Made by a program: the position numbers and the translations under genes
Shown: in pieces, positions 9,473 to 64,000 of the stretch
Layout of the letters: every line of letters begins with the position of its first letter
How positions within the stretch are numbered: the first letter of the stretch is position 1
DNA from: Octopus bimaculoides
Lineage: Eukaryota
Reading direction: 5' to 3'
DNA length: 64,000 nucleotides
Assembly (NCBI RefSeq): GCF_001194135.2
Contig: NC_068985.1
Location: 33,908,001 to 33,972,000, forward strand
Notes under the pieces: generated by a model
Told to the model about the DNA's origin: nothing
The model's database searches: none
What the model saw: the letters and a program-made list of their open reading frames with translations, nothing else

Positions 9473-9640
9473 CATCATCGTTTGATATCTGTTTTCCATG
9501 CTGGCATGGGTTGGACTGAGGTCGGGAAAGCCAGTGGCTGCACCAGGCTCCAATCTGATCTGGCTATGTTTCTACAGCTGGATGCCTTTCCTAACGCTAA
9601 CGCCAACCACTCTGGGAGTGTAGTGGGTGCTTTTTACGTT
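9473..9640 (-). mobile_element. SINE family C with (ATG)n tail, partial
   Basis: catcatcatcgttt...ttccatgctggcatgggttggac...gctggatgcc; matches 39268, 52335 and 63660. Confidence 0.75.
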
Positions 9641-19384: not shown

Positions 19385-20805
19385 AAGTTAGGCTCAACTC
19401 CTTTTTCAGTCACTGTAATAAGCAAAAAAAAAAATTGTATCACTTATAAAACAGCATATACAATTCAAAGTATTGAACACATTGACTGCATCAATAGGTA
19501 AAGAAGTGACTACATATTATTTAAGCAAATCAACTAAACAGTTTAGTGATTATAATGGCTCTACACTCCAGGACACAAGTGATTGTGTAGTTGTCAAAAG
19601 TTCTATGAATGAGCATCAAAACAAGGTCAGGGCACTCTGTTTTTCTATGCACAGAAAGCAAAAAAAAAAAAAAGAAAAATATTGTTTTGAGTTATACATC
19701 ACAGTGATAGCTATTAAAGAAAACCTAAAAAGCACTCATGCTAGTGCTATGATGAAAGCACTGGTGCCACATAAAAAGCACCCAGTACACTCTGCAGAGT
19801 GGGTGGTGTTAGGAAGGGCATCCATCAGTAGAAACCATACCAGAACAGACATTGAAGCTTAGTGCGCCCCTGGCCTCACCAGCTCTGATCAAACCGTCCA
19901 ACCCACGCTAGCATGGAAAAGACGTTAAATGATGATAACCATAATCTATTTCTCAAAATATAAAACTCATGTTATTTAATCTATTAATAATCCTTTCTGC
20001 AATAAACACAAGGCCAATCGATTACATCGATCCCAGTGTTTAACTAGGTTTAGTCTATTAATAATATTATCTTGTTTGTGCATCAGTTTTCTGTGATTGA
20101 AGAGCAATGCAACTAGCAAGAAAATGATTCAGTATGTGACAAAACTAATTGTAATTTCTCCAATTAAATGATGCTCAAGGTCAATGACATTTCTGATTCT
20201 GCTCCTAGAAAATTATCAAAAAAATTTAATACTTTAAATAACCAGAAGCAACGCCCCACATTTTATCAGTTATAATGTCGCAAAACAATTTCCCTTTGTA
20301 TTAGCAATGGACTTGCCCAAGGGGTGTAACTCTTGAATATTTCTATTTAAGTTATGCCTCATTATCCAATTTTGATATTGAAATGTGTTTAGTTTTTTCA
20401 CAAATTCTTCTATTTCTTAAGCTTATGAAAGCAGCTCCACTAACTCCGACTTAAAGCTATGCGGCTACTTGGATAGTTAAACAAGAGCTATCACTACAAC
20501 GAGAGATAAGGAAACATAACGGGGCAAAATAGTTGTCATTATCCCGCAGAGCATATACTTAAATAATTCATTCAAATTTTGGTCAGCAGTTTTGAGAGAA
20601 CGATGTTAGTCAATACAACCGATTCCAGTACTTGAATGGTACTTTATTTTATCTACTCAAGAGTAGCAAGAAGATAACTCGACCAAAATATCATTAAGCT
20701 CTAACATGATATTGAGCAATTTTTTTTTCTGGCAGTTAATACTAAAAGGATATATAGGTACTATTCAAGAAGAGTGGTCCCGGTGCGCGCACTCGCGTAC
20801 TCTTT

Positions 20806-34700: not shown

Positions 34701-37700
34701 TATCAGTGTATACTAGGCATAGCTAGGATTATATTTTCAACAAATTTACAGCATGGATTATTATTATTATTTACAACTTTTACAACTTAAGTTCCTCCAT
34801 AAAATTACTACTACATTACACATTAATATTATCTAACAGACAATTAAGTAACTAATCAAAATGTTAAAGGTGTATTTCAAAAATAACAAAAGAGAAACAT
34901 ACAACAAGAACGATTACTGTTCTTTCACAATGCTTTCAGTTAATCCAACGGTTAGTTATTGATAGAAAAATATCTTTACAGCCTGCTTTTGAACAATCCC
35001 AATAGAATTGGCAATAAGGGAAACAGTTAAAAAAAGTATAATGTGATAAAACTACAAGTTGTCTGCATCAGCAAACATTATGTAATAAACATTGTGAGTT
35101 GGATAAATTTGATACTTTGGAGCTATCCTAGTACCAAAGAGATAATAAAAAGAAATGTTTTATTTTCTTCTTTGAGATGAAGGGATGGCACTAAAGCATC
35201 AGATTCTTCTCCTCATGGTATAAAAACTTATCCAAAAGCGCCAACTTTCCTATAAGTGAAACATGATATCAAAAAGTTAAAACCTACTACTATAACATAC
35301 TAGCATTGTACCTTGAAAATTTACATAACAAACAAAAAGTTAACCACTTGAATTCGAATGGATAAATATACCTGCTTCAATACATTACAGGTGTGTCCAT
35401 GTGGTTTAGAAGTTTGATTTTACATGGCTTTGTGTTTGATTCCAGTGTATAACACCTTGAGCAATTGTCTCCTACCATGGATTCAGGTTGACAAAAGCCT
35501 TGAATTTGCTAGATCATGTGGAAGCCCATCAAAGTGACTGTTCTTGTTTGGGGTGATGAATCTAGTTTGTTATTCAGCTAAACAGCAGCACCGGGCCCAT
35601 GGATGCCTTTAAGCAGAGTCTTTTTCACTGCAAGTAATCAGGCCAGGTCTCTAGTCTGAGAATAATTTCCACACACACTAGTCTTGGAGATTTTGAAAAT
35701 GGTTGTGGTCACAGCTCTTTCCTCTTCTAACTAAAGCATTAAAAATCTAGAAAAGAGGCATATTCACAGGATAATATTTTGAATTATTTCTGTAAAATAT
35801 GAAAACTATACTTTTGTAAATAGTTTTATTTTCATATCTTTTAAATTATAGTGCCAAAACTAAAATTCTATGCTACTCTGCATTTAGATATTGCTTTAGA
35901 CCAAGTTTAAAACATGTTTCTCTGATGAGCCACGAAAAATGGACCCACATGCCTTCACACACAAGCAGACAGTTTATTTTTATATTTAAGATATATTATC
36001 TAATGTTTAGTAAAATACATACATATACATTCGATATTAATATGTGTTAGATTTTTACACAATCTCAAAAGTATTCAACAAACATTTGATATTTCATTTT
36101 AACCAATAGTAAGTATGAGATAATACTGGATGTAGCACAGAGAAGAGCCACTAAGTACAGATATAAATTAATTGTCTATTGTTTCATGACTTGAATAAAG
36201 TGACATTTTTCTATTTGCCTCACACTAGATACATAACATTCTCGTTTTATAAGTAAATGGCCAAGGTTAAATATAACAACACATTCCATATCCAAGTCAC
36301 TAAGTAAGAGCATTAAAAACCACCTTAGAGTGTACTTATTAAATTGCAACAGGAATATGAAAGGCTTAATATAAGCCATAATTAACATTAGGAAGAAACA
36401 ATACACAAAACCAATTGCAAAAACATTTCACCCATGTTATTATTACAGAAAAATAGAAGCTAATATTTAAACCAGAAAGCTAAGTAAAATTGTGACTCCT
36501 TCCTTACAGGTAGGCATGTCCCTTGTGGGCTCATGAGTGCAGGTGCCACATAAAAGCACCCAGTACATTCTGTAAAGTCATTGGTGCGAGGAAGGGCATC
36601 CAGCTGTAGAAACCTTGCCAAAACTAACATGGAGGCTAGATAGCTCTTCAGCTGGCCAGTTCCTGTCAAACTGTCCAACCCATGCCAGCATGGGAAACAG
36701 ACATTAAATGATGATGTTTCAGGTCTGTGCAACATGCAATAGGAAATGTAACCATTGTTTAAGACCTTCCTCAGTCAAAACATTTAAAAATATAAACCAG
36801 TTGATGGAAATATTTCACTATATTTGGTCAGAGCAATGAGTTGGCTACAAAGTTAGGAGGACAAATATGTAATAGAGAACGAGAGAGGGTGAAAGAGAGA
36901 GAGAGAGTACTCTCTGACCATATACATTGAAATATTTCCATCAACTGGTTCATATTTTGAAATGTTTTAACTGACGAAGGTCTTATATAAGGGATGCATT
37001 TCCTATTATATATTACACAAACCTGAAACGTATATATTATTTCAAACTATCACTATTTGGTTTGACTTCATTATTACAACTTATATGACTTGATGCAAGC
37101 ACAAACTAGCCACTCCAGGCTCCACTTATGCAGACACTCTAACAATGATTTGAAGCAGTTTGTTATATTTGACTCCAGTGCACTGCTTCTTAGTGTAATA
37201 TGAAATAATATGCACACACTCATGTATATGTATACAAGTGTGGGCGTAGCTGTGGTAAGAAGTTGGCTTCTCAGCAAAAAGCTTCTGGGTTCAGTCCCAG
37301 TGTAGCATTATAGACAAGTGTCTTCTACTATCTATGTATGTATGTAAGCATCTTTTCATCTTGACATCATGTGATAATTGTAAATGAGTATCCCTGTCAC
37401 ACAAGCAGTGTCACTCATTTCCAATATTCTGCAAAAACATGCCTGGCCATGAAGAAATATTACATTGCTTGGAAACAGGTGAGTGTTGGTGGCTAGAAGG
37501 GCATCCAGCCTTAGAAACCAAGCCAATCAGACAGGAACCTGGTACAGCTCTCCAGCTGTGGTCAAACCATCCAACCTATGCCAGCATAGAAAACAGATAT
37601 CAAATGATGATGATGATTATATATATTTTTTCTTTTATTTGTTGCAGTCATTAGACTGTGGCCATGCTGGATCACTGTCTTTAGTCAAGCAAATCAACCC

Positions 37701-40700
37701 CAGGACTTATTCTTTGTAAGCCTAGTACTTATTCTATCGGTCTCTTTTGCTGAACCGCTAATTTATGGGGACATAAACACACCAGCATTGGTTGTCAAGC
37801 GATGTCTTTGGGGAGGAACAAGTACAGACACACAAACACACACACATATATATATATATATATGATGGGCTTCTTTCAGTTTCCATCTACCAAATCTACT
37901 CACAAGGCTTTGGTCAGCCCAAGGCACTTGCCCAAGGTAGAAGACACTTGCCTAAGGTGCCACGCAGTGGGACTGAACCTGGAACCATGTGCTCGGTAAG
38001 CAAGCTACTTACCACACAGCCACTCCTGCACCTGTATATATATTCTTTTATTCTTTTACTTGTTTCAGTCATTTGACTAAAGGGTTTTAGTTGAAGAAAT
38101 TGAGCCCAGGACTTATTCTTTGTAAGCCCAGTACTTATTCTTTCGGTCTCTTTTGCCGAATCGCTAAGTTACGAGATGTAAACACACCAATATCTGCTGT
38201 GAAGTGATGGGGGGGGGGACAAAGACAAATACACACACATATATATACATATATACATACACACACACACAACAGGTTTCTTTCAGCTTCTGTCTGCCGG
38301 CCTGAGGCTATAGTTGAAGACACTTGCTAAAGCTACCATACAGTGTGACTGAACCCAAAACCATGTGGTTGGGAAGCAAGTTTCTTACCATACAGCCACG
38401 CCTGTACCTATAAATATATATATATACACAAACACATGCATATAAATATATACATGTACACACTAGTACATATATATTCTTTCTGAGTGATGGAAACAGA
38501 ACAGTATTAGTTCAAAAGAGCAATCTGTGTATTGTGCTTAAAGTAGACACATTGTTGAAAGGTTACTAAACTGTAGTATTGTTTTATAAATGTATAGTGT
38601 TAAGAAATACAGAAAAATATCAGTAGCAGACAACAATCATCCAGTAGCAGTAGTGGAATTGTTAAATATATATTTCTCCCACTTCAGTAACAAATATCCT
38701 CTAGTAACAATATGGTAAGATAAAATTAGCCACTACTGATATAGGAAAACAGTGATTTTTCAATCAATGATGTCACAATTAGCTGGCAAGTTGAATCAAA
38801 ATTTGTTATTAGTGATGGAAGCAGTATTGATTTTAAATGGCAATCTGGGGATCATACATAAAGTAGACACATATTGAACCCTGATAAACTCTAGTGATCA
38901 TCTTTTGAGATACTGGAAGAAACCTGTTCTTGTTTCGTCAATCAAACTTCAACAGCCCAAGACCTAACATAATGTGACTCTCACTGAACTGTATTCCCAC
39001 ATATTACATAAGAACTTCTTTAGTGCTGATGTCACAAAAAAAAAAAAAAAAAAAATCAGTATTCTGTAAAGTAATTGGCATAAGGAAGGGTATCCAGGTA
39101 TAGAAAACCATGCCAAAGCTGACATTAGTGCATGACACTGTTCTCTAGACCAGGGGTTTTCAAACTTTTTTACTTGCGGACCCCTTTATATTTCAGGCTT
39201 TACTTTGGGACCCCCTTATAAACGCTTATGAAATTTATACATAAAATATTTGCTTAAAAAATAACATATCATCATCATCGTTTAACGTCTGCTTTCCATG
39301 CTAGCATGGGTTGGACGATTTGACTGAGGACTGGTGAAACCGGATGGCAACACCAGGCTCCAATCTAATTTGGCAGAGTTTCTAAAGCTGGATGCCCTTC
39401 CTAACGCCAACCACTCAGAGAGTGTAGTGGGTGCTTTTATGTGTCACCCGCACGAAAACGGCCACGCTCGAAATGGTGTCTTTTATGTGCCACCCGCACA
39501 AGAGCCAGTCCAGGGGCACTGCCAACGATCTCGCTTGAAAACCCTACAAAGGCCAGTCAGGCGGTACTGGCAACGGTCACGCTCAAGATGGTACATCTTA
39601 TGTGNNNNNNNNNNNNNNNNNNNNNNNNNNNNNNNNNNNNNNNNNNNNNNNNNNNNNNNNNNNNNNNNNNNNNNNNNNNNNNNNNNNNNNNNNNNNNNNN
39701 NNNNNNNNNNNNNNNNNNNNNNNNNNNNNNNNNNNNNNNNNNNNNNNNNNNNNNNNNNNNNNNNNNNNNNNNNNNNNNNNNNNNNNNNNNNNNNNNNNNN
39801 NNNNNNNNNNNNNNNNNNNNNNNNNNNNNNNNNNNNNNNNNNNNNNNNNNNNNNNNNNNNNNNNNNNNNNNNNNNNNNNNNNNNNNNNNNNNNNNNNNNN
39901 NNNNNNNNNNNNNNNNNNNNNNNNNNNNNNNNNNNNNNNNNNNNNNNNNNNNNNNNNNNNNNNNNNNNNNNNNNNNNNNNNNNNNNNNNNNNNNNNNNNN
40001 NNNNNNNNNNNNNNNNNNNNNNNNNNNNNNNNNNNNNNNNNNNNNNNNNNNNNNNNNNNNNNNNNNNNNNNNNNNNNNNNNNNNNNNNNNNNNNNNNNNN
40101 NNNNNNNNNNNNNNNNNNNNNNNNNNNNNNNNNNNNNNNNNNNNNNNNNNNNNNNNNNNNNNNNNNNNNNNNNNNNNNNNNNNNNNNNNNNNNNNNNNNN
40201 NNNNNNNNNNNNNNNNNNNNNNNNNNNNNNNNNNNNNNNNNNNNNNNNNNNNNNNNNNNNNNNNNNNNNNNNNNNNNNNNNNNNNNNNNNNNNNNNNNNN
40301 NNNNNNNNNNNNNNNNNNNNNNNNNNNNNNNNNNNNNNNNNNNNNNNNNNNNNNNNNNNNNNNNNNNNNNNNNNNNNNNNNNNNNNNNNNNNNNNNNNNN
40401 NNNNNNNNNNNNNNNNNNNNNNNNNNNNNNNNNNNNNNNNNNNNNNNNNNNNNNNNNNNNNNNNNNNNNNNNNNNNNNNNNNNNNNNNNNNNNNNNNNNN
40501 NNNNCCACATACAAAAACTAACTTCGTAGTTAATCTGCCTTTGATATTGCTGCACCTCTTATGTGTCCATAGCTTGCACTGGGTACATCTTATAGAGTTA
40601 CTACCTACTCCTTTTCTGCATACTGAATTTTTACATTTATTTATTTAACAGTTTTTAACAAATAGGTTTATTGTCAATTAAAAGATTTCGATTAAAAAAC

Positions 40701-43700
40701 ATATATAAAATCAAATTGCTCATAAAAAGTATTTGCTGTCCACGGATCCCCTGTCTTGTCCTTGCGGACCCCCTGTGGTCCGCGGACCACAGTTTGAAAA
40801 CCCCTGCTCTAGACTCATTAGATTCTTTCAAACTGACCAACCTATGTCAATATGGAAAACAGATTGTTAAATGATCATACACAGACATATATATATATAT
40901 ATATATATATAGATGAGTATCATTGTATCAACCAGATTATTGGATGTTGTTACACACTGCTGGTCACATTGTGTCTTCTTGTATTGTTGTATGATGCTAT
41001 CTAGTTAGCTAGGTGGGCTGGCCAACGTTCCCACTGAACAGAATGCCAGTCCATCACTAGATATCCAACTACAGCTGAGTGAAGAAGAGCAGTGTAAAAT
41101 GAAGTGCTTTGTTCAAGAACACAATGCACTACTCTAGGAATTGAAACTCTGATCTTGAGATCATGAATGCAACACCCCAAAAAACTAAGCCACATGCTTT
41201 CTCTCTCTTTCCACACATATAAGAAATGTAGTCTATAGTATTAGGTGTACTCAGGGACTTGTGCTGAAACAGGATAACGACATACATTGGGGAGACAGCA
41301 CATAGCACAGGTGAGCAGAGAGGTGAAACCTGGTGGAAGCTCAAAGAGGAAAGCTCTTCAGTGGTCTACCAACATTCTTGGTAAAAACTTCTTTGTTCAC
41401 TGTAGTTATTCTTACTGGCTTCTAGAATGTTGATCAATAGTTTCCAACCTTAAGGAAACTTCTTTTAGACTTTCCTGAAATCTTTACCCTGTCCAGCAAC
41501 ACTTTCAATCATTCAGTGGTCTACCAACATGGAGGCTCAGTTAATAATATAGATGTTAAGATACTATCAACACATAAAACAAGCTACAGAGGCCACACAC
41601 ATAGTAATAGACAGACTGAGCCTCAAGAGAAAGTGTAAAATAATAAACTCCCTCCACCCACTACATAATCTGACTAAAGACAGAATGAAGGAAAAAAAGA
41701 TACAAATAGTATAATACACAAACCCTTATGCATACACACAAAACAGAACGAGAAAGAAAAAATACAAATAAATGATGATGTATGCATACATATGTAAACT
41801 TTCACATTAAATAGGTTCAACAACTAATTTTAGTGACCCCACCTCTCTATGTCAGGCATCTTATTCTAAGCAATTTCTACTTATATAACCCTTTACCAGA
41901 TGTCACATGCTCTCATCTTATGCTTCTTTCTACCATCTTGGTCTGAATTTGTTAAGATCATCTCATCACCAGATCGATTGATGACCTTGGCATCATTTCT
42001 AGTTTCCAGTGGTCTATCTGCAATCTGTCCTTCCTAGTTCCATTTAACCTTGTTTTACCTTTGAGAATGCTGGGGATTCTCACCTGCTTCTGCACACACT
42101 ATGCTGTTCTCCTGTTGATCATGAACTAATTGCATTTGGTCATAGGGTACACATAAAGTGTCTTTTTTAATCTAATTCTAGGTCTCTGAACTGTATGTGG
42201 CTGTTGATAATATATATTCATTATGTATTCTTCTTTTTAGAATCAAGGAAATATTGCTTTTAAGGATGGTATGAGATCAACCCAACGACTGCCACTTCAC
42301 CGTGATCCCTTCATCCTTGGCTAGCATTGCTCAGCTGCACTGACCTCAGTAGACATTATCCAGTGGTTTTAATGCATCTACTGAGTATAAGACCATTGAG
42401 CAGATTGCTCAATGGTCTTATACTAAAACTTATTTTTAGGTTTTCATTTGCCATCACTTAAATTTTCTTCAAGTTCATGAGGAAGCTGACAAAAAGTAGG
42501 ATATCATGGAAAAACCTCAAATGATATGAGTATTTCCATCAATCCTAATTCTTCTTGATTCACAACCTTGCTAGCAAAAACCTTATGCTAGACATGCTAT
42601 AAAGAGTCTTGATGAGGTTGTATCATCTTGTTAGACTTCTTTCTCCAACTGGAATACTTCAGATTTGAGTAATCATATGAATGACTAGAATTATTGTAAA
42701 TTTTTTGTTGTTTGAGGGCTATAATGATTAGTTCAATTTCTACTGAGTCAAAGGCCTATTTGTAGCCAAGAAAGGAATAGCCTTTACTGAAGCCTGCGTG
42801 TTCTCATGGTTGATTTTTGTGAAGAGTTTTAATTCTATCAGTGATACATTTTATAAAGCTGATAGGGCTAAAATTTGGTAGCCTCTTTTGCATTGTACTT
42901 CCTGTGAAGCAGGATTGTGATGGTATTGTTTCATTTATTCTGTATTTTTCTTGTTTCAGTCAGGTCATAGAAAAGTTGGCTTACTTTTTAAGGATTAATT
43001 CTCAGACATCTCAAAGAAGGTTAATGATGATGTTATCTGTGCCTGGAGCTTTGCCTTTCTTCATGGTACTGATAGCATTTTCAACTCCTTTCATGGCTAC
43101 TTGTAGAATATCTGCAATTTCATGTACATTTTCATCCTTCGTCTGTTGATTAGAAGAATACAGTTCTTGATAAAAACTTCTTTGTTCACTGTGGTTATTC
43201 TTACTGGCTTCTAAAATGTTGATCAATAGTTTCCAACCTTAAGGAAACTTCTTTTAGACTTTCTTGAAATCTCTGCCCTGTCCAACTTTCAATCAATCAC
43301 ACAGTGTTTCAGTGACAGTCCATTCTTTGTTTCTTACTAACAGTTTTACTCCATTCTACATATCTAACTTTCTTCTCTCATGTTGTCCTGAAGCATTATA
43401 GCTATCTGCATTTTGTCATTACATTTCTGGTCTCTCTTCTGAGAAGCTATTTGTCTTGTCTTACCTTTCTCTATTATTTACCAACAGACATCAGTGGTTC
43501 ACAAATGTTTCTATTTAGATCAATCACTGACCCTACTGTTATTTTGGTGTTCTTTAGGAGCTGTATAGCGATGCTGTTACATTACTGGTTAATGTCCATG
43601 AAAAACCATTAAGGATAAATCTTAGATAAGCATAGAATTTTGTTCAGTTCTTTCTATACTGTAAATTTGGCGGATAGATTGATCGAAAGTAAACGAAGAA

Positions 43701-43892: not shown

Positions 43893-45096
43893 TGATCAGT
43901 CATCATATATTTATTTTCATTAGAGGATTAAAATACTTATAGAAATCACATCAACACAACTGCACCACATATACAAGATATCTTGATTAGAATATGCTAA
44001 TATTTTTTCGCAAATGCTACACGTTTCTCAATAAGCTGTTATGAGTAAACAATAATAAAAGCATCTTCAGCTATTGATTTGGCAAGATCTACAGTTGAAT
44101 GTTTCTGCCGCTCTTCTAAGTTGTTAGGTTTTTTCATCTAGTTTTTCATAACTGGAATTACTAACATCTTAATACTAGCCACTATCAAGTTTATACAGTT
44201 AGGAATTTTTTTTCTTTTTTCTGCTACATGTTTTCTAACGGGTATTCAATCTTCCTAATGGGTTGGACAGGTATGCAAATCTGAATCTGTCAATCTATCA
44301 GACTCAGCTTATTACTAAAAGGATCCGAAAATTATCAAACTTCTACTGGAACATATCACTGAATCTCAAGACTCATACGGAACAAGGATAATTTATTTTA
44401 CCCCCAATATCCAGGTGAATATTGGTTATAAAAAGAGAATTGTTTGTTTTCAAAATCCGAGTTGTTTTGAATGAATTAAATCTAAACCCACTGAAACACA
44501 TTTAGTTATCTATCAGAAGTGGGTGTGTCACGAAATCATGCGATAATTCAAGAATAACATTCTTTGCAGTACTTTTTACTTTACTTGTTAAAGTTACAAA
44601 CATTTTAAATTCATACTGTTACTACTACTACTGTTAAAAAATAATAACGAGGATTTTTAAATTTGTATTTAATAATTTAGTCTACCTCACAATTAGTAGA
44701 CCTAACTTTGAATACTGGATTCAGGTGCGAGACCGAATCTTTATTAAATTATTTATTGAAGTTTCAATTTGTCTTGGTTAACGAAGACTAACTAATAAAA
44801 GATACTAATAATTTTATTTGTTTACATATTTATTGAAAGGAATTTACTGAGAAATGTTATTGATATAAATTAAACTGAAACGTATCCGAAAGTTTGAATG
44901 AAAGTAAGTTACTAAAATCGGGGAAACATTGTATTCAAACAGGAAATTTATAAAAATAGCTGCGAAGGAAAATATGAGGTATGTAAAATGGAGGATCTTT
45001 AGTATGGATTTAGAAAAAAAAAATAGTGAAAAAAATAATCGAGGAAACCTGTAGTAAGATTTTCAAGTCCTCGAAATGTAGATTGGTGGTCGCCAT
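13885..45096 (-). CDS. COMMD9: COMM domain-containing protein 9 (Commander/CCC subunit), 6 exons, 199 aa
   Basis: Exons 45096-45049, 30926-30798, 20979-20895, 17867-17778, 15460-15357 and 14028-13885 total 600 nt, all GT-AG with compatible phases. The protein includes FPANFHNNLKELLVKII, SLPHLVDFDWRVDLK, SRMSVPTCL and VELSKETLNTMLDGLSKIRDQLSSVA, matching the vertebrate COMMD9 segments I recall (FPENFHQNLK, SLPRLVDLDWRVDIK, ELSKETLDTMLDGLGRIRDQLSAVA). Confidence 0.95.
15003..15285 (-). mobile_element. tRNA-derived SINE family A
   Basis: High similarity to 53196-53567. Confidence 0.85.
15357..15460 (-). CDS. COMMD9: COMMD9 exon 5
   Basis: (V)SLPHLVDFDWRVDLKAASNTISRMSVPTCLVQFE, containing the COMM-domain WRVD motif; gtaagc donor. 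Confidence 0.95.
16192..16530 (-). mobile_element. tRNA-derived SINE family E
   Basis: Minus-strand head gtgaaggcgcatggctcagtggttagagca...gtttgattccc; diverged relatives near 7620-7925 and 41000-41190. Confidence 0.7.
17181..17427 (+). mobile_element. SINE family B
   Basis: ggcggtgagctggcagaa...ttctgagttcaaatc...cctttcgggg...aataaagaat. Confidence 0.8.
17778..17867 (-). CDS. COMMD9: COMMD9 exon 4
   Basis: (A)NFHNNLKELLVKIIIDNYSKWREASIKNQ; phase 1-1; gtaggt donor. Confidence 0.93.
18464..18684. mobile_element. Mariner-derived MITE
   Basis: Imperfect TIRs tacaagggaatgttgaaaagtttctggct / agccaggaatttttcagcacccccttata with TA ends. Confidence 0.75.
20804..20848. repeat. Compound (CT)n(AT)n microsatellite
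   Basis: Direct reading; similar compounds at about 22885-22942 and 25638-25705. Confidence 0.9.
20895..20979 (-). CDS. COMMD9: COMMD9 exon 3
   Basis: LYIALNLLLKKAIFADTQNPEVLRKLFP; tttcag acceptor, gtaagt donor. Confidence 0.92.
25638..25705. repeat. Compound (CT)n(AT)n(GT)n microsatellite
   Basis: Direct reading. Confidence 0.9.
29150..29690 (+). mobile_element. RTE-clade LINE RT fragment
   Basis: AFIDLEKAFDRVHL...LRKL motif near 29455-29525. Confidence 0.75.
30322..30535 (+). mobile_element. SINE family B, diverged
   Basis: Similar to 17181-17427. Confidence 0.7.
30798..30926 (-). CDS. COMMD9: COMMD9 exon 2
   Basis: CPSKDIVIKICNDIMKFSGLGSPEPQLKLIGCSLKIDKKQSEN; long polypyrimidine tract, gtaagt donor, phase 0-0. 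Confidence 0.9.
31535..32380 (+). mobile_element. Decayed Tc1/mariner-superfamily element
   Basis: Imperfect TIRs (ggctaaatttga core). Internal frame PNSPNCNPMDYYAWG resembles the WPPxSPDxNPxD motif. Confidence 0.75.
36716..37032. repeat. Imperfect inverted repeat (arms of about 115-120 bp) with hammerhead-like cores; possible Penelope-like terminal remnant
   Basis: Arm 36716-36833 is the approximate reverse complement of 36912-37030. Each carries CTGANGA-AGGT-(39 nt)-ACCT-GAAAC. Confidence 0.75.
37622..38408 (-). mobile_element. Two adjacent SINE family A copies
   Basis: Copies at about 37622-38032 and 38040-38408, same orientation, both similar to 53196-53567. Confidence 0.8.
39268..39604 (-). 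mobile_element. SINE family C, running into the N gap
   Basis: Matches 63660-64000; has internally repeated atgtgycacccgcac units. Confidence 0.8.
39605..40504. other. Assembly gap (900 N)
   Basis: Run of N. Confidence 1.
41850..43560 (-). mobile_element. Decayed RTE-clade LINE (endonuclease to RT region)
   Basis: Track ORF 43011..43226 contains VENAISTMKKGKAPGTDNI, similar to EVxxAxxxMKxGKAPGxDGI. Confidence 0.7.
45049..45096 (-). CDS. COMMD9: COMMD9 exon 1
   Basis: ATGGCG start; MATTNLHFEDLKILLQ is similar to vertebrate MAALTAEHFAALQSLLK; phase 0; atypical donor gtttcc. Confidence 0.82.
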
Positions 45097-45331
45097 AGTT
45101 GTGCACGTGACCGATGCTTGTTTGTGCCGCCACCTGCGTGTGGAAAATAGCAGCCAATGAACGTCGAGTAGGAACGGGGCCGGCACGGGCAGCTACGGTT
45201 GGCGGGAAGCTGTGCCAAATCTAGTCGATCGTCTGCTTTCAGTGAGATCAGTAGCTTCTCTCGTATCTCGCCGGCATTTTGCTTTCCGTTCTTATTTTTA
45301 CTTAGGGAAATCACACTCAAATACAACAAAT
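45097..45331. promoter_or_regulatory. Putative bidirectional promoter between COMMD9 and the acidic-protein gene
   Basis: GC/CpG-rich 235 bp between divergent ATGs; CACGTG at 45104-45109, CCAAT at 45154-45158, TTGGCGGGAA (E2F-type) at 45199-45208. Confidence 0.7.
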
Positions 45332-45345
45332 ATGCCAGACACAAA
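45332..45345 (+). CDS. Acidic protein exon 1 (coding part)
   Basis: ATG CCA GAC ACA AA|gtaag; phase 2 matches exon 2. Confidence 0.72.
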
Positions 45346-47803
45346 GTAAGAAATTTTTTTCATTCCTCTAAACTTCAATGAAATTATTACACTATTCTGT
45401 TTTTTTAGTGTAAAATTTTTACTTTTATCCATTTTTCTGAAATACCATTGTAAATTTTATTCTTTCCATGATGGTCGACTCAATTTGTTCTCAGAATTTA
45501 AAATAAATCTTTATTATTTCACTAAATCACTAGTATCTAAACGAATTGTGCTATAAGAAAGATTTATTAATGAAATTATATTTTCATGAAGCATAAGTTA
45601 TTAATGAAAATCCGTTTGCTAATTTTCCATATCTTTTTCTTAGCCGTTGCCGTGTATTTCTCTTAAAATGAACGACATAAAAGCGCAAATTTACCTTTTA
45701 TAAAAATGAAATTTCTATATATTCTTAAATGGTTTATAAAAAATGTTTCCCCGCTTGGTTGTCTTCCAAAACTTAAATATTTTATACCTGACTTTTGTTG
45801 TTAGTATTGTCGGTGGTTCTTTTGTTCTGAGGCTAAGTAAAAACTCTGCTATAAATTTATGTCATTTAATTTAAATATTTCGCCTAAATTTCTCTAAATT
45901 CCTACAATTAACTTTAAATATAATTTGGGATAATCTTCAGTCATTTTTTTTTTTAATTTTGAAGAATTTATGTTGATATCTAATATTTCATTGGTTTTTA
46001 TAGTAATGTAAATTAATGCGTGCTAATATATAGTTTTATATACGGTCCCCTTTTTATATTTAATGAAAACTAATTTCCTTTCTATGTTCCCCTGTTAAGA
46101 TTGCCATATTAGCCAAGTCTTTGTCCGGTTAACCTGTCCCCCACCCATGGTTATTTCCAGTTCCTTTTTTTTTCCTTTGGCTCCACTTAACGACATGGCT
46201 TTTATATGAATGATAGATGCGGCTTTGTCATTTCTATGGTTTCCCTGAAGCCCCGACCACCTTTTAGCTTTGTAGGTAAGTCAAACCGTTTCTCGGTGTC
46301 CGTCTCTGTCCTGATCGATTGAGAGGGTTAGAGCAGCGCGGAGGAGGGGATCTGCTTGGGATAGGGGGTGGTGGATAAGGTTAGGGGACTGGGAGTGTTG
46401 AAAAAAAAAAGTTCGGCTAAAGAAATAAGGAGAAGGCTGTGTAAGGAGGCTTTAGTCAACCGTTGACTTTGTATTGACTGGTGCTGAAAGCTTCTCCAAT
46501 CTGCACAAAGCAATGGTCCTGTCCGCCGCTACCACTTGCCTCCAACTTCCACTGACTCTTTCCTTTCTGTTCTCCCCCCCCCACCTCTTCTATCACCGGC
46601 AAATTTTTATCTCTGGTTTTACCCGCCTCCGCCGCCGAAATAGTTGACTACTTAACTAACACATTTCTTTTCCTCGTTCCGTTTGTTCGCTTGTTTTGTT
46701 TATAATAAAGAATGCCAAACATACAAGTGTGTTGCTGTTTCGTTAGAGGAAACGGCTAGGTGCCGTTGTATGTAGATCAGTTTTCTTTCTCTAACAAAGC
46801 TTGTTTTGCTTTGTGGTGAAATTTAATTTTGAATCTGAGATTATTCGGATTTCTCACTTTGTAATTGAATTAAATACTTCACAATTTCTGTGGTGGGTAA
46901 AGGGGTTTTATTTTCCTTTCTAACGGCTAAGAGCAGCAACTGAGTATTAGCGATGCATCGATCTTTATAGAGAATAGATTTTATTTTATAGTATTTTACT
47001 TTATTCAGGACCAATGACCAGGAGACTGAAGTTGAGACTCCAGTTGTCAAGAAAGTAGATGATAAAAAGCCTGAAGTAAGATTTGGTTTTACGTTGATTT
47101 TTCTCACATTTATTGAAATATACCTTATTATTTTTTGGAGGGTTACGATGTTTGTGAATTGTTATATTTATTGCTACCTGTTTCAGGTGGAGAGCGAAAA
47201 GAATGCTGAGGATGGCAAGACTGGAGATAAAAAAGACAAAAAAGACGGTAAAGATGATTCCGACAAAGTAAACAGTTCTGAACAGCAGCCGGATGACTCC
47301 GAGTCGAACGACAAATCTGAATCTGGAGCTGAGGATTGTAATGATAACAAAGAAGAGACAAACAACAAAGAAAACGACGAGAAAGAGAACGAAGACGGTA
47401 GGTTTGCCATTAACGTTTTGCTTTAAAAGCTTTGGGAGAGGGATGTCTTCTTTTTCTTTGTATTTTCAGCAGAGACACATGGAAAGTGGTGTGGTATGTA
47501 TGTTAGTTGGTTCTGTAGAGGTGTGGGTGTTCCCTGGTTCGTTACGGAGCGGTTAAGCATCATGCTCCTCGCCAGAATATCGCACGCATCACTACCATAC
47601 TTTTTTTGTTCTTTATTTTACTTTTTTTTTTTTCATTCGCCGCTACTTAAGGGGTATATTTGACTGAAGCTTATTGTTCCTCTTCAGATGTGATCAGCCC
47701 GCGCAAAAGAGCCCCAGATGACTTCATAAGGGACGATGTCAGCCCATCTAAGAAATCAAAAACAGAAACTGAAGAGAAGGAAGCTGTAGCACCAGAGTCA
47801 TGA
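45332..47803 (+). CDS. Small acidic, probably intrinsically disordered protein with a C-terminal bipartite NLS (prothymosin/parathymosin-like), 4 exons, 135 aa
   Basis: Exons 45332-45345, 47009-47075, 47187-47397 and 47688-47803 total 408 nt, all GT-AG and in frame: MPDTKTNDQETEVETPVVKKVDDKKPEVESEKNAEDGKTGDKKDKKDGKDDSDKVNSSEQQPDDSESNDKSESGAEDCNDNKEETNNKENDEKENEDDVISPRKRAPDDFIRDDVSPSKKSKTETEEKEAVAPES*. The gene model is solid; the family name is tentative. Confidence 0.85.
47009..47075 (+). CDS. Acidic protein exon 2
   Basis: ttattcag acceptor; (K)TNDQETEVETPVVKKVDDKKPE; gtaaga donor. Confidence 0.85.
47187..47397 (+). CDS. Acidic protein exon 3
   Basis: tttcag acceptor; D/E/K/N-rich frame within the track ORF 47094..47426; gtaggt donor, phase 1. 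Confidence 0.9.
47688..47803 (+). CDS. Acidic protein exon 4
   Basis: cttcag acceptor; DVISPRKRAPDDFIRDDVSPSKKSKT...ES*; AATAAA at 47926-47931. Confidence 0.85.
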
Positions 47804-50800
47804 TTTCTGGCAAAATCTCTTATGAACAGAGTGTACTGTTTAGCACATTTCTGGCTAATTTAGTTGGCATTTCATTAAGATGTATAAATGATCATATCAT
47901 TTGCTATCATCTTTTTTGAGTTCTCAATAAATTATAAGTTGTTAATTGTTTTTTTTTTCTTCCTTCCATCCTTGTCCTTAACGTCTTGACAAGATGTTTT
48001 CAATACTTAAGTATAGTAGCTAGTTGTGAAACCAATAACATTTACTATATATTTTTCCATGTAGACTGCATTATTAGTTGGCTTCTTTTACCCTATTCCT
48101 CCTTCTCCAACCATGCCTGCCAGCCAACGAGACGGCAAATGGAAAAATGGGAGGGGGGACTTGCCTGCCAGTGCTTTCTTAATTTTTAAATTTTCGTCAT
48201 AACTTTCATCACAGATAACATAGCTTTTTGCTACCTTTTCATTGTTTACAGAATACAATATCATCACTTGTTTTTCTTTTGTTTTTGTCATCCACCTATA
48301 AGTAAATACCTTGTAGGTTTTGCTAGGGATAGGGTAGTATCCCTTTGACTACTTTCAATCGCACAACACGTTGTGCTATCTAAAGTTGGTGACCCATTGC
48401 CAATTCACTTGACCCCTTTTGCATCTGTATTTTACAGGTGTTACTTTTAAATTTTCTCTTAACCTTTTACGGTGGTTTGAGGGTCATATATTTTTTAATT
48501 GCAAGTGTTTAGACGGGATGTTTTTCTTTATTGGTTACTTTAAAGAAAGATTTTAAAAAATTTAACTTTTTTTTAGCATAGTATTGAAAACGTCATGAGT
48601 GATGGGAATCCTGATTTCTATGTTTTGTCCCCCTCCTTCCCAGCCTTCTGTATGAGGAGAGCCCCTTGTTGGTCTTGCCACTGAGGACTGTATACAAAGT
48701 TTTAAATAGATTGAATGGCTTATGTATGTGGCAACGAACTTGCAAAAAATAAATCCTCCTTCATACTTCCTGATGGTGAATAAATGGTTTCATGTGTACC
48801 ACAAAATGTCTTGTTCTTCATGTTACTGTTGTGGCTTTTTTTTTTTAATTCTTTTTTTCTTTCAGCTAAATTGCTTTGTTACTATGTGGTTTGAAGCAAA
48901 CTGCATGGGTTCGTGAATTGTAGAAGCACTTGTATTTTTGTGGAGCAGTCATGTGTGCCCATGAAAGTAGTCTTACTGGCTAGTATAGTTTTACTGATGT
49001 GTGTACAGAGCCAAGTTCAAGAGGCAGCCATCTGTTGCCAGTCTGGTGTCAACTAAACTGTTAAATTCGTTAATGCTTAATGTGCAACTTGGTAAATTGT
49101 ACGTGTTTTGGGGGCTGCGTTTTCTTCAGGAAACCAGCGGTTTATCAGCTTTAGGAATATCTAGAGGTATGCTTAGTATACACTTTAGGTACAATTCCAC
49201 GTGTAAGGTGGGTACGTCAACTATCATATCTGGTACAACTAGGAATTGCTGCAAGGGTACCTGACAAGAGCCTTATGTTGTTTTTGTGTGTCGTTGATTT
49301 ATTGGTCACTAGATATGTATCAGATTGGTTCCTGTCCTCAGCAACAGATAGTACTTTCTGCTCAAGTCATGAAAGGGTATTTTGCAGGTTGCATTTGTTT
49401 GATTCATGTTGTGCCTACTTTAATGGTCTGAATTATTTGTTTGGAACTGGCGCTCATGCGTTATTTCGCTAGATGCCCTTCCTATGCCAACCACTTGATA
49501 AATTATTGGGTGGAGCATTTTCTTACATTACTGGACAAGGTGTTTTCGATATGATCAGGGTAAAAGGACCTCTCAACACTACCCTTAGTTTGCTGGTTTG
49601 CCAACCTGTTTATATGTGCTGAGTGCATTTTTTAGGTAACTGTTCTTTATATAGACCAAGCAGAGTAACAAGGCCAGAAACTGGAAAGGCTTGTGTATTT
49701 TTCAGATAAAATTACAATAACAGGTAAACAAAAGTGAAGGTGGGTGATGAAATAAGGTGCAGTGTTAATTTACTTATTTTAAGACCTTGTCTTTCAGATA
49801 AATTCACACAAGCTACATTTTTTTTTTTTGAGCAGATTATATTAGTTTTTGCATATATAGCATTAACGTGTATGTTTTTTTCATTTTAACTAAAATATTA
49901 GGTAATGTGGTTGTACTTTTTATGCACAATGTTTGTTACCATCTTCCCATTTTCATAAACCAGTAAGGGAACAAGAAAGTCCCTCCAGGTACAATAACTT
50001 GCATGCAATGAATATGGTTGGAATTTTCTGAAGACATTTCATTTCAAAGACACAAACTACAGGGATTTTTTTGGACATGTAAATTCAGTGTAGAATATAG
50101 ACCAGAAGTATAACATGCAATATAGGGAAGTATACCTATATGTGCTACGTTCCACACAGTTGTATACACTTATTAAAAAAGGCCTATTTGCTCATTAGTA
50201 CTGCATCACTTTTCAGACCTGTTATGTTAATAGTTATCTGGGAAGATGTAGAACTTAATGATACAAATGTAGCAGATCAAAGTAAAGATCCTGAACAGTG
50301 ACTTACATTAGAGGATTATTGTTTTTCATACATCTTATTCTTCAGTTTTTATGTTCTAGTTTTCCTCTTACCTGAATCAGTAGGGATTATATATATTCTC
50401 ACTTCTTTGCTTACATTTAATCTACTTATTGCTAATATCAATAAGCCTTCTGTCTGTGCACCAATTCTTAATTATGAGGTTGTTTTAAGGTCATTTCGAA
50501 CTATGACTACACTCCAGTGGCTGCCTAGTGAATGTACCTGACAACTGATTGAAGGTCTAAAACTTGCATTAGGCGGTTCTTGAAATAAAACATTGACCAG
50601 TTGCCTCTAAAATTAGGTAGAGGTCCTGTTTCATTGTTGCAAAAAAGTCTTTACAAATTCTTGCTTTATTTCATACAAATGAAACATGTGCAGATATGGA
50701 AGACATGACTGGTGTATAAACCCATTGTTTGTTGCCAGGTTTACATTGCTGACATGGAATTGTTTGCATTTGTAAATAAGCTACACATATTTCTAAACTA

Positions 50801-52334
50801 TGAATTAAACATGTTTTAATTGAATATTCTTATTCATGGCTATTTTACCAATGTGATTTTCCAATGTTTTGTAGCTTGTCTCGAGGAATATAAAGTTAGT
50901 TATTTGATGTAGATATACACTGCTCAAGAGGTTTTATACCCATATCAACCAAGTTTTTTTGCAATATTTAAATTTAGTATATAACATTAAAATGAATTGG
51001 GATATACAGTAAGGCCAATTAGTTTTGTTGGTTACATTATGATTGAAATAACTTAACCATCCTGGAGTGAGGCCATTCCACCTTCATTTGTAAAAATTTC
51101 GTATGTTAATTGTCCCTGCATGTGTGTATTGTCCTATCTATGTTAGCCCCTTGTGGGTAATTAGAAATCAGTTTTGTTGGTCACATTACCTGGTTTTTCC
51201 CTTTTGGTCATGTAGTGTCACTCATTCAGTTTCTCAATCTTTTTTTTTTATAAAAGAAGCAACATCACTAGTGGTCAATTGTCACACTTCCTTTTCTAGA
51301 CCAATAGAAACTCATTCTTAATACATTTTATTATACAGAGTATACATTACACTTCCTATGCAAAGGGATACATGGATTGATTTAGTGCATTGAAAGCACT
51401 TGGGTGTTATATCTGGACGTTTTCTGACTCAGTACATTTGTAAACCTTATTTGGTGCAGTTTTGAACTAGTGCTGAAATTCTGCGTAATCCAATTACAAC
51501 ATAGTGTCCCCAAAACAAAGTTTGATCATTACTATATTTTAATGAAAAGAATGTGTTCAATTAGAGCAATTGCACATAAATAAATTTCATATATGAGAGA
51601 AGGTTATATCTGCCAGTGACACGTGAAAGACGTCCAGTACACTATGGAGCAGTCGGCATAAAGGGCATCCAACTGTAGAAACCAAGGTAGGGAGTTTAAT
51701 GCGGCTTAACCAGTTTTGGTTGAATATGTAAATATGCGTATTTGAATTGGTCAGAGTTAGACTCTTACTCATTCTCTAGCTAACTTGCATAAGAGATGGA
51801 AATGTTACCTGTGATATCCTGTATTGGAAGAGATTTGCTTAATGCTAATGAGCTTATATGACTAAGCAATTTATTTCATTGAAGTATATTTTATATTCAG
51901 AATCACCCTTTTAAAATATATTTTTGCTACTTTAATGGTTTGATCTGGCCAAAATATTTCTTCATGTTCAAACTGATCAGATCCAACACCTACTCTACAA
52001 TTTTATTCTAAAAAAATATAGTCATACAACTGAAATCTCAAAAGCTACAAGATAAAGCAGGATAAATTAAAAACAATGTGGACAAATAAGCGTTATATTC
52101 GTTAGAATACTCTGAATGCTATAGGTTTTAAGTCATTTTCAGTGGCAGGACCTTCTTAAATTTGTAATTGTTCATTCTTGATTTTCTTTTTATTGTATTG
52201 CTAGACTGGATGAATTGGTGTCAGCCTGTACAGAAAGAATAAATTTCTAAATTTTGAGTTATTGTATTATGTGTGTGTGTATATATATATTATAAGGTAA
52301 TAGAAATAAAGTATGTAACATAACAATTGCAATA

Positions 52335-52600
52335 TCATCATCATCATGGCTTAACATCCGCCTTCCATGCTGGCATGGGTAGGACTGACAGGAGTTGGAC
52401 ATGCAGAAGCCAGCACCAGACTTCTGTGATTGTTTTGGCAGGATTTTTACAGTTGCATATTCTTCCTAATGCCAACCACTTGGCAGAGTGAACTGAGTGC
52501 TTTTTGTGGCACAAGCACAAGTGGGGTCAGTTTTGGCAAGATTTTTACAGCTGGATGCCCTTCCAACCACTTTACTATGTGGACTGGGTGCTTTTTAAGT
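52335..52600 (-). mobile_element. SINE family C, diverged
   Basis: catcatcatcatggcttaacatccgccttccatgctggcatggg... Confidence 0.65.
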
Positions 52601-60929: not shown

Positions 60930-62420
60930 TTGAGTTTCCTGCTGTGATGAAGGTTCATCTAGGACCTAAGACAACGGGAGGTCATGTTGTATTTTGAAAA
61001 CATCTACTCCTACTTCATGATGTTCCCTCAGATGTTTTTGGCAAGACATTAAATATCTGTAGGCCCTTGAACCCCAAGTTACTGCAATATATAATCTTCA
61101 TTCTAAATGGGATACCTAGGGCCTTTGGAACAGTGCAGTGACTGGTATAGCTCTCAATGCCAAAGTTTTGTGTCAATTCCTCCAGGATCTTCCATACATA
61201 TATCATTGCATACCTATCCCATCTTTATTCCAGGGAGTAGAATCATAGCTCAATCTCTCCCAGTGGCTTAACTATTCCATTGATGTAATCTTCCTGGTGT
61301 AGCACTGCTGAACTACCTCAAGTTCCACTATAAATTTCACACTCTAGGGTAACCACAGTAAAGAGTAGTAGACCACACTGCTGAGTACAAATGACCTCCA
61401 GAGAACCAGCATAGTTTCTTAGTTATTTGCTTGCACATTGCCACCATTTTGGTGATATGTATGTGAAACAAAGCATCATTGCTCATATCAGTCCCCAGAT
61501 CACACACTGTCTGTGACTCTGGGATTGCTGCTCCTTTTGGTTCAAAGTATCATTGTTGTGGCATGTGAACACCAGCTAGCTCATAGCGAAGGGCTTGGAA
61601 TTTCCCTCCATAAAATTGCATGTTGTTTTCTTCAGCCCATCTATCTATAGCATCTAACTCTTCTGTAGAAGATTAGCATCAAACAGTTCCTTGACTACTT
61701 GTACTATTTTTTGTGTCATTGGTATGGCTGGTAAGTGTGCCTGTCTGTGTAACTGATGGTATATCTGAAAGAGATACCATAAACAGCAGTGACCCCAAAA
61801 TAGTTCTCTGAGGTGCTGCACTCTCTATTACTGTCTCCTTGGAGAGGACTTCATTGGCTGTCACAGCCTGGCTTCTGTCTTTTAAGAAGTCATACACCCA
61901 CTCTCCCTGTTTTCCGACTATGCTGAGTCTCTGTAGCCAGTGAAATATCATCCCATTGAACAACCTTATCAAAGGCCTTTGCAAAATCAAAATATATCAC
62001 ATCTATGCTTGAGTGATTCATTAACTGTTTCAACACCCTGTCATAATGCTGCAAAAGCTGTAAGGCAGCTTCTTCCTGAGCAGAAGCCATGCTGGGTGTC
62101 AGGAAGCAAGTCATTATCTTCAAGGAATGCAGACAGTTTCCTCCTGACAATGCATTCCATGATTTTGCTGCCATGAGAGATTAGAGACACAAGTCTATGA
62201 TTTTTAGCATCTGCTCTGCTACTTCCTTTATGGGTAGAACGTATGCCTTAACTTTTTAGGAAGTCTCCCAGTTGCAAGGAAGCTCTGAAAGAGAATCTAT
62301 AGTGGTCTTGCTAGAGTCCTTTTCATTTCTTTAGGATTGCTGAGAATCCCTCAGGGCCTGTGGCTGAGTTTGAGCTCATTTCATCAATGGCTGATATTAC
62401 ATTTGTTTCTTTTATTTTGA
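60930..62420 (-). mobile_element. Decayed CR1-group LINE RT region
   Basis: Track ORFs contain IDVIYFDFAKAFDKV and APQRTILGSLLF, followed by a degenerate xxDDTK motif. Confidence 0.85.
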
Positions 62421-63659: not shown

Positions 63660-64000
63660 ATCATCATTGTTTAACGTCCGCTTTCCATGCTAGCATGGGT
63701 TGGACAATTTGACTGAGGACTGGTGAACCAGGTGGCTACACCAGGCTCCAATCTGATTTGGCAGAGTTTCTACAGCTGGATGCCCTTCCTAACGCCAACC
63801 ACTCCGAGAGTGTAGTGGGTGCTTTAACATGTCACCGGCACGAAGGCCAGTCAGGCAGTACTGGCAACGGCAATGCTCAAAATGGTGTATTTTACATGCC
63901 ACCTGCACAGGAGTCAGTCCAGCAGCACTGGCAACGATCTCACTCGAATGTCTTTACACGTGCCAGGAGGCGACGCTGGGCACAGGTGCCATCACGATTT
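63660..64000 (-). mobile_element. SINE family C, truncated by the window end
   Basis: Matches 39268-39604. Confidence 0.8.

Follow-up and report, generated by a model that had tools for sequence, protein, structure and literature searches.

In this report, we focus on a four-exon gene on the forward strand of a 64,000-nucleotide stretch of the Octopus bimaculoides genome (NCBI RefSeq assembly GCF_001194135.2, contig NC_068985.1, positions 33,908,001 to 33,972,000; hereafter the window, with positions counted from its first letter). The gene, at 45332-47803, is real, complete and expressed, and its product is a protein of 135 amino acids (aa), MPDTKTNDQETEVETPVVKKVDDKKPEVESEKNAEDGKTGDKKDKKDGKDDSDKVNSSEQQPDDSESNDKSESGAEDCNDNKEETNNKENDEKENEDDVISPRKRAPDDFIRDDVSPSKKSKTETEEKEAVAPES. 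It had originally been predicted to encode a divergent homologue of prothymosin/parathymosin or a functional analogue of these proteins. The explanation that we prefer, and to which we give an even chance, is that the protein is a proliferation-linked nuclear phosphoprotein, namely a lineage-restricted, small, disordered polyampholyte that is not demonstrably related to prothymosin. The evidence for this view comes from the conservation of the gene in other species, from a short string of invariant motifs in its C-terminal part, and from a predicted promoter of corresponding type, and it is weighed below against several competing explanations. All coordinates given for the gene and its flanks refer to the forward strand.

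Gene structure, expression and selection

The coding sequence opens with an ATG at 45332-45334 and closes with a TGA at 47801-47803. Splicing and translation of the exons show that all introns have GT/AG borders with polypyrimidine acceptors, and bear out the intron phases of 2, 0 and 1 given in the original prediction. Coding exon 1 (45332-45345) comprises only 14 nucleotides (nt), which supply MPDT and two bases of the K5 codon, and is followed by the donor GTAAGA and a phase 2 intron of 1663 nt (45346-47008). Coding exon 2 (47009-47075) encodes residues 5-27 and precedes a phase 0 intron, and coding exon 3 (47187-47397), which encodes residues 28-98 and has a mixed K/D/E/S composition, ends with an invariant KENDEKEN (47367-47390) and precedes a phase 1 intron. 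Coding exon 4 (47688-47803) encodes residues 98-135 and the stop codon, including a bipartite import-type signal, SPRKR-APDDFIRDDV-SPSKKSKT (47696-47764), and a conserved PES C-terminus. The composition reported earlier for the product is exact, with 45 D/E and 25 K/R residues (net charge -20) and a single F and C, while W, Y, H and L are absent. An in-frame stop lies 174 nt upstream of the ATG, and the 64-kb window contains one copy of the gene. Exon 1 encodes only M-P-[DE]-T-[KR], which is kept in all species, and removal of the methionine would leave an N-terminal proline.

Two relatives, P0001 and P0002, were found in a word-indexed search of 5.8 billion proteins. P0001 is the product of a full-length spliced transcript (accession ERR1711973_818829, from a series that we take to be a Tara Oceans metatranscriptome run) and matches the gene model. 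P0002 is derived from a JGI contig, L001 (sample 3300019043), in which intron 3 has been spliced out and the sequence of intron 2 is still present; on these grounds we regard the contig as metatranscriptomic. Spliced transcripts of orthologues therefore exist, and the lack of transcript support that was to speak against the original prediction is not seen. Orthologues are additionally present in two genomic contigs of other species, L002 (ENA ERZ21867824) and L003 (Logan ERR12921341), in which the four-exon layout, the 14-nt exon 1, its donor, the phases and the stop are all as in the window gene; exon 2 of the orthologues is 61 nt long and has the same phases as exon 2 in the window. Thus, three species keep the four exons together with their splice sites, phases, start context and stop.

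The reading frame is under purifying selection, as indicated by the ratio of nonsynonymous to synonymous substitution rates (dN/dS) estimated by the Nei-Gojobori method. This ratio is 0.03-0.16 for the whole gene, 0.00-0.03 in the C-terminal 57 codons, and 0.07-0.58 in the indel-rich N-terminal part, which is the fastest-evolving region; dS is saturated between the window gene and the other sequences and amounts to 0.41 between L002 and L003. The functional core of the protein is the strongly constrained stretch of ~57 C-terminal residues. Furthermore, intronless, decayed copies of the gene occur in two more read sets (L005 230-582 and L006 103-281), where they are rearranged, internally duplicated and interrupted by an in-frame stop. 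They have the look of processed pseudogenes, and their existence in relatives suggests germline expression of the parent gene. When the window was compared with L002 and L003 by tblastx and blastn, conservation was confined to this gene and its flanks, so that the synteny of neighbouring genes could not be used.

As far as can be judged from sequence, the family is lineage-restricted and narrowly distributed, being limited to a narrow group of marine animals. A HMMER search with the family profile against 1.84 billion representatives, one for each 50% cluster of about 15 billion proteins, yielded six matches at E ≤ 0.001, all of which represented the close relatives already described or fragments of their exons or pseudogenes, and none of which was named; it is this small number of close relatives that leads us to regard the family as lineage-restricted and unnamed. 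The family also appears to be unannotated. The window's own protein was not among the protein collections searched; it had no Pfam, PDB sequence or PDB profile match at E ≤ 10, and no other known family could be assigned to it. Metagenome contigs gave no match either with the family alignment or with the conserved pattern of the 3′ untranslated region (3′ UTR) described below.

Several features of the introns are recorded here for completeness. Intron 1 contains a GC-rich patch at 46240-46660 (GC 0.50, observed/expected CpG ratio 0.62), the rest of this intron being AT-rich. The patch corresponds to no repeat in the window, no Rfam match and no conserved sequence in L002 or L003, and intron 1 of the window gene does not align with intron 1 of either contig. 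No hosted non-coding RNA was found in the introns at the Rfam gathering score, the sole match being 21-bit SNORA61 noise. In intron 3, a good acceptor (ttgtattttcag) precedes and a good donor (gtatgt) follows 24 nt at 47460-47483, whose use as a cassette would keep the frame and add AETHGKWC ahead of the import signal. This candidate cassette exon is probably not used, since inspection by eye of intron 3 in L002 and L003, which is much shorter (126 and 177 nt, respectively), shows nothing like it.

The C-terminal module and the predicted promoter

AlphaFold modelling of the window protein returned a predicted TM-score of 0.12 and no secondary structure, and the protein is predicted to be essentially unstructured. 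Within the family, 51-55% of residues are charged and the net charge ranges from -17 to -20, which corresponds to -0.15 to -0.17 per residue (-0.15 in the window protein), compared with -0.40 in prothymosin alpha (PTMA) and -0.29 in parathymosin (PTMS). The charges are also distributed differently. Approximate kappa is 0.13-0.16 in the family but 0.43 in PTMA and 0.46 in PTMS, and the longest stretch free of K and R spans 10-15 aa with 3-5 D/E residues (15 aa with five in the window protein), as against 57 aa in PTMA, of which 33 are D/E, and 44 aa in PTMS, of which 31 are D/E. The window protein is a well-mixed polyampholyte, in which acidic and basic residues are finely interleaved. In addition, each family member has 16-21 Ser/Thr residues, several of them in an [ST]xx[DE] context.

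The C-terminal module consists of KENDEKEN, a gap of 5-6 residues, SPRKR, a linker with conserved hydrophobic positions, SPSKKxKT, and an acidic tail ending in PES. KENDEKEN (K88-N95), which contains two KEN motifs, is invariant in six of six family sequences despite saturated dS, and the other invariant residues are S101, P102, K104, R105, S116-S118, K120, K122 and T123. An invariant SPxK site stands ahead of each basic cluster of the import-type signal and conforms to [ST]Px[KR], the consensus of cyclin-dependent kinases (CDKs). In composition-matched shuffles, the frequencies of at least two KEN motifs, at least two CDK sites and a bipartite signal were 0.028, 0.020 and 0.049, respectively. 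KEN motifs are known as degrons of the APC/C (anaphase-promoting complex or cyclosome) that are located in disordered regions and prefer Cdh1 (PMC8764033).

The basic clusters of the import-type signal are invariant across the family. The bipartite consensus of Robbins and Dingwall comprises two basic residues, a spacer of 10-12 residues, and at least three basic residues within five (PMC2964165), and the window protein fits it as KR + APDDFIRDDVSP + SKKSK, with a linker of 12 residues when three basic residues out of five are required. A bipartite nuclear-import-type signal is therefore predicted, and the protein is probably nuclear. The arrangement KR-APDDFIRDDVSP-SKKSK resembles the nucleoplasmin-type signal in its acidic 12-residue linker (13 residues when the count runs from KR to KK), but differs from it in that the linker has conserved hydrophobic positions, [FV]-I-[KR]-D-D-[VMI]. 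Because an import signal alone would not need such positions, they hint at a second binding motif embedded in the linker.

Between species, the non-coding DNA around the gene is unalignable except for three blocks, 45013-45119, 47857-47943 and 48765-48862. The first of these, a conserved upstream promoter block, is 82-83% identical to L002 4707-4822 and L003 748-853 and includes a YY1-like element of the GCCGCCATAGTT type (GCCGCCAT, 45091-45100), which is a consensus match, and an E-box, CACGTG (45104-45109). The core promoter (45154-45208) contains a CCAAT box (45154-45158) and an E2F-like TTGGCGGGAA (45199-45208), and lies in a CpG-rich island at 45040-45340 with a GC content of 0.49 and an observed/expected CpG ratio of 1.10, versus 0.34 and 0.41 for the whole window. 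The E-box, the CCAAT box and the E2F-like element all occupy columns that are invariant in the three species; the names of the promoter motifs rest on matches to consensus sequences. With predicted E2F-like and CCAAT elements conserved in a CpG island, the promoter would be of the E2F/NF-Y proliferation type. The probable start of transcription is close to a conserved (G)TCGTCTGCT that precedes the ATG by about 115 nt, and comparison with P0001 suggests a 5′ UTR at 45209-45331. In the transcript of P0001, the ATG is preceded by 99 nt or more, which by eye resemble the DNA just upstream of exon 1 in L003. No upstream ATG occurs in 45200-45331.

Downstream of the coding sequence, the conserved 3′ UTR block (47857-47943) is 85-87% identical to L002, L003 and L001 and contains an AATAAA signal at 47926-47931. 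Just upstream of this polyadenylation signal, an invariant inverted repeat, AGATGTATAAATG...CATTTGCTATCATCT (47878-47912), marks a possible hairpin, for which RNAalifold predicts a 13-pair stem, with a 3-nt insertion specific to the window placed in the loop; every pair is invariant, and the stem thus has no covariation. Within the hairpin region, TGTATAAAT comes near to a Pumilio-type element. The third block (48765-48862) is weaker, shares 75% identity with L002 8613-8718 and has TGAATAAATGGTTTCAT at its centre. Situated some 1 kb beyond the stop codon, it may serve as a distal polyadenylation site if the 3′ UTR is longer, and the transcript contig L001 does extend beyond the first AATAAA.

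Relationship to prothymosin and competing explanations

The window protein shares several properties with PTMA and PTMS: it is small (about 100-135 aa), acidic and disordered, with hardly any hydrophobic or aromatic residues, processed pseudogene copies are found in relatives, and an E-box and an E2F-like site occur in the promoter. Its likeness to PTMA extends to a C-terminal bipartite signal with an acidic linker in near-identical wording, KRA-[PA]-[DE]D...DDV...KK-x-KT. The parallel drawn originally between the two tails, KR-13-KKSKT in the window protein and KR-12-KKQKT in PTMA, is accurate, and an import signal of the form KR-x12-KKxKT can be recognised (KRAPDDFIRDDVSPSKKSKT in the window protein versus KRAAEDDEDDDVDTKKQKT in PTMA). 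For such comparisons, the human PTMA copy was verified against database PTMA proteins and thymosin alpha-1 in PDB. There are also clear distinctions: PTMA and PTMS are without the tandem KEN motifs and two SPxK sites of the window family, and the DDVD caspase site of PTMA is absent from the window protein.

Membership in the prothymosin/parathymosin family, as first proposed, finds no support in profile searches, BLASTP, gene structure or charge. At E ≤ 10, the Pfam Prothymosin family (PF03247) matched neither the window protein nor two orthologues, although human PTMA and PTMS, included as controls, scored 120.5 and 62.8 bits (cut-off 23.9). BLASTP against PTMA gave E = 0.7 or worse, the best segment pairing NKENDEKENEDDV with NEENGEQEADNEV of PTMA, upstream of the signal in both proteins, and the family profile recovered no PTMA from the 1.84 billion representatives at E ≤ 0.001. 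An hhalign comparison of the family with a PTMA/PTMS alignment aligned the import signal only (23 columns, 48% identity, P = 0.0069, probability 5.5%). On a hidden Markov model (HMM) of PTMA/PTMS built from 29 sequences and run with all filters off (--max), the window protein scored 6.1 bits, which was reached by 3 of 5000 shuffles, and the orthologues scored -1.3 to 0.9 bits, reached by 111-140 of 5000. No N-terminus resembling thymosin alpha-1 (..KDLKEKKEVVEE..) was aligned by BLASTP, hhalign or hmmsearch, and the count of K/R-free stretches revealed no long polyacidic tract in the window protein.

Gene structure, for which a comparison of intron phases had been proposed, likewise differs. 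The window gene has three coding introns (2, 0, 1), as against four (0, 0, 1, 0) in PTMA, whose structure was taken from the corn snake PTMA locus, L004. This locus comprises five coding exons, and its last intron splits the signal between KRAAEDDE and DDDVD..KKQKT, a position confirmed by a read-through isoform, P0044. In the window gene and both orthologues, the two basic clusters lie within the last exon and this signal-splitting intron is absent, so that only the order of a phase 0 intron followed by a phase 1 intron is common to both genes, which is weak evidence. Since the gene lacks four of the five defining features that could be tested, we do not file it as a prothymosin/parathymosin member. 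What stands of the original interpretation is an acidic, disordered protein with a prothymosin-like import-type signal; what does not stand is family membership. The resemblance is probably convergent, and the shared KR...DDx...KKxKT wording is most simply explained if both families arrived independently at a classical bipartite signal whose linker is acidic.

The tails of the orthologues offer a further observation. P0001 (residues 128-134) and the products of L001, L002 and L003 end in ...EEKKEVVEPES, with EEKEAVA in the window protein. The heptamer EKKEVVE of the orthologues is identical to residues 19-25 of human prothymosin alpha, but lies at the opposite end of the protein and is not colinear; by a rough estimate, the chance of such a coincidence at this composition is about 3%. 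Other assignments were considered and rejected. A Keap1-type E[TNS]GE motif is not conserved as such (ENGD in the orthologues, ENED in the window protein), no hydrophobic N-terminus was seen that would fit a secreted peptide precursor, and securin, geminin and PIP-box proteins are not matched, there being no D-box and no hydrophobic or aromatic motifs (one F only).

Two other known systems invite comparison. NUCKS1 (nuclear ubiquitous casein kinase and cyclin-dependent kinase substrate 1) is a disordered nuclear protein rich in K/E/D/S, with import signals and CK2-type and CDK-type sites, and is both proliferation-linked and lineage-restricted. The window protein resembles it in disorder, K/E/D/S richness, import signal, CK2/CDK-type consensus sites, proposed link to proliferating cells and narrow lineage, a likeness of kind only and not of family: NUCKS1 is longer and has a GRP-type DNA-binding motif that is absent from the window protein, and no sequence relationship between them was detected, the exhaustive profile search having yielded just the six close relatives. 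The N-terminal region of Cdc6 carries KEN-box degrons of APC/C-Cdh1 next to CDK sites. Like KEN substrates of the Cdc6 type, the window protein has KEN motifs in a disordered region that are conserved amid drifting sequence, SPxK sites within about 10-25 residues of KEN, and an E2F-like site in its promoter. It differs from them in having no D-box, ABBA motif, leucine or aromatic cluster.

The KEN, SPxK and import motifs, taken together with the E2F/CCAAT/E-box promoter, are the reason for regarding the protein as proliferation-linked. In this proposed scheme, the gene would be transcribed in proliferating cells and the protein would enter the nucleus via importin alpha; phosphorylation by CDKs at the two SPxK sites would tune import and/or stability. 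The KEN motifs may make the protein a substrate or a decoy of APC/C-Cdh1, and the variable N-terminal part, rich in K/D/E/S and containing candidate CK2 sites, could function as a spacer of charged residues or bind weakly by electrostatics.

Several points weigh against this proposal. At least one KEN motif arises by chance in 24% of shuffles, a K/E/N-rich sequence yielding KEN easily. No D-box (RxxL) is present in any family member, and the window protein has no leucine and a single aromatic residue, while APC/C substrates usually combine degrons (PMC8764033). Counted from KR to KK, the linker of the import signal measures 13 residues, one over the classical 10-12. Finally, family sequences outscore 97-99.9% of their own shuffles on the PTMA model, and the order of residues is thus non-random with respect to PTMA. 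Since shuffling destroys the C-terminal import signal, however, beating the shuffles cannot separate ancestry from convergence.

This last point bears on the possibility of a true, extremely diverged orthologue of vertebrate prothymosin alpha/parathymosin, in a family older than vertebrates of which the import signal and colinear traces would be left. Such an origin would account for the colinear C-terminal position and 48% identity of the sole hhalign match, the 6.1 bits reached by so few shuffles of the window protein, the pairing of NKENDEKENEDDV with NEENGEQEADNEV ahead of the signal in both proteins, and the phase 0 and then phase 1 introns that precede the KR cluster in both genes, and both families are small, disordered and acidic. 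We nevertheless consider it improbable, given the empty Pfam scan with working controls, an hhalign probability of only 5.5%, HMM scores of about 6 bits or lower (far under the 23.9-bit Pfam cut-off), and an exhaustive profile search without PTMA. To these are added the missing thymosin alpha-1-like N-terminus and polyacidic tract, the different charge pattern, and the differences in first-intron phase, intron number and signal-splitting intron. A genuine protostome orthologue in the more specific sense, which keeps the import signal, an ENG[DE]-type upstream motif and the phase-0/phase-1 order, is a shade less probable again. A functional analogue without common ancestry would be a nuclear, polyanionic, disordered chaperone or buffer that binds very basic proteins, such as linker histones, core histones or sperm nuclear basic proteins, by charge alone. 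The net charge of -17 to -20 in all members, the high proportion of charged residues, the disorder and the nuclear-import-type signal are in line with this, as are the 16-21 Ser/Thr residues that could add negative charge once phosphorylated, and the proliferation-type promoter, PTMA being a Myc and E2F target. Yet selection is strongest on specific motifs and not on bulk charge, the charged N-terminal part being the fastest-evolving and most indel-prone, and the K/R-free stretches hold only 3-5 D/E residues. A chaperone of histone H1 in particular is made less plausible by the well-mixed charges (kappa 0.13-0.16 versus 0.43-0.46 for PTMA/PTMS) and the net charge per residue of -0.15 versus -0.40, and the ProTalpha-H1 complex has been described as one of proteins with high and opposite charges, -44 and +53 (PMC7661507), the charge being much lower in the window protein. 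An analogue is accordingly judged unlikely.

It is scarcely credible, finally, that the locus is not a functional coding gene, whether as a chance splice of low-complexity open reading frames (ORFs), a pseudogene, or exons of a larger gene. The absence of the window's own protein from the collections searched, the low-complexity sequence and a first coding exon of just 14 nt might be read in this way. Exons, splice sites, phases, start context and stop are nonetheless kept in three species, dN/dS is well below 1 with saturated dS, and a spliced transcript exists. Moreover, the gene is immediately bordered on its upstream side by a conserved promoter and on its downstream side by a conserved polyadenylation region, and the in-frame stop ahead of the ATG, together with a putative 5′ UTR devoid of upstream ATGs, also argues against such a reading.

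Other features of the window and significance

An interspersed repeat family is represented in the window by at least nine copies or fragments, which are 76-88% identical to one another; copies lie at 63713-64000, 39324-39600, 9516-9633, 19775-19882, 36537-36622, 51611-51682, 37496-37543 and 52532-52564. Its core, ...CACCAGGCTCCAATCTGATTTGGCAGAGTTTCTACAGCTGGATGCCCTTCCTAACGCCAACCACTCCGAGAGTG..., may correspond to an abundant cephalopod (octopus) repeat resembling short interspersed nuclear elements, and a literature search for 20-mers derived from the repeat gave no matches. An ORF of 167 aa at 4905-5408 (forward strand) contains ...CSWHFP..., resembling part of a THAP-type zinc finger. On the reverse strand, frameshifted remnants of a mariner-type transposase are found at 10820-11648, whose best relatives are 48-50% identical and carry PF01359, and fragments that by eye resemble reverse transcriptases of retrotransposons lacking long terminal repeats (non-LTR) are found at 43011-43238 and 61893-62247 (...KKGKAPGTDNI... 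and ...IDVIYFDFAKAFDKV...). A run of N at about 39600-40500 represents an assembly gap, which shows the window to be part of a scaffolded eukaryotic assembly.

With regard to wider significance, the comparison with prothymosin indicates that acidity together with a KR...KKxKT tail does not suffice to call a protein a prothymosin, and automated '-like' names of invertebrate proteins may often rest on such a resemblance. If the protein were instead a protostome orthologue, the origin of a family regarded as vertebrate-specific would move to the bilaterian ancestor, and the extent of charge-pattern drift possible in a fully disordered chaperone would be revealed. In practical terms, the gene would be of more than modest interest only if experiments demonstrated cell-cycle regulation or binding to histones. 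It is best placed, as a new and lineage-restricted member, among the small, charged, disordered proteins of the nucleus, which form a broad class. If the reading of a proliferation-linked nuclear phosphoprotein is true, it would be an unnamed, lineage-restricted gene missed by standard annotation and family libraries, and would represent a compact case of selection on a short string of motifs (KEN-KEN, SPxK, KR, SPxK, KKxK) amid a drifting charged bulk, as well as a convenient model for the combination of CDK sites, import signal and degron.

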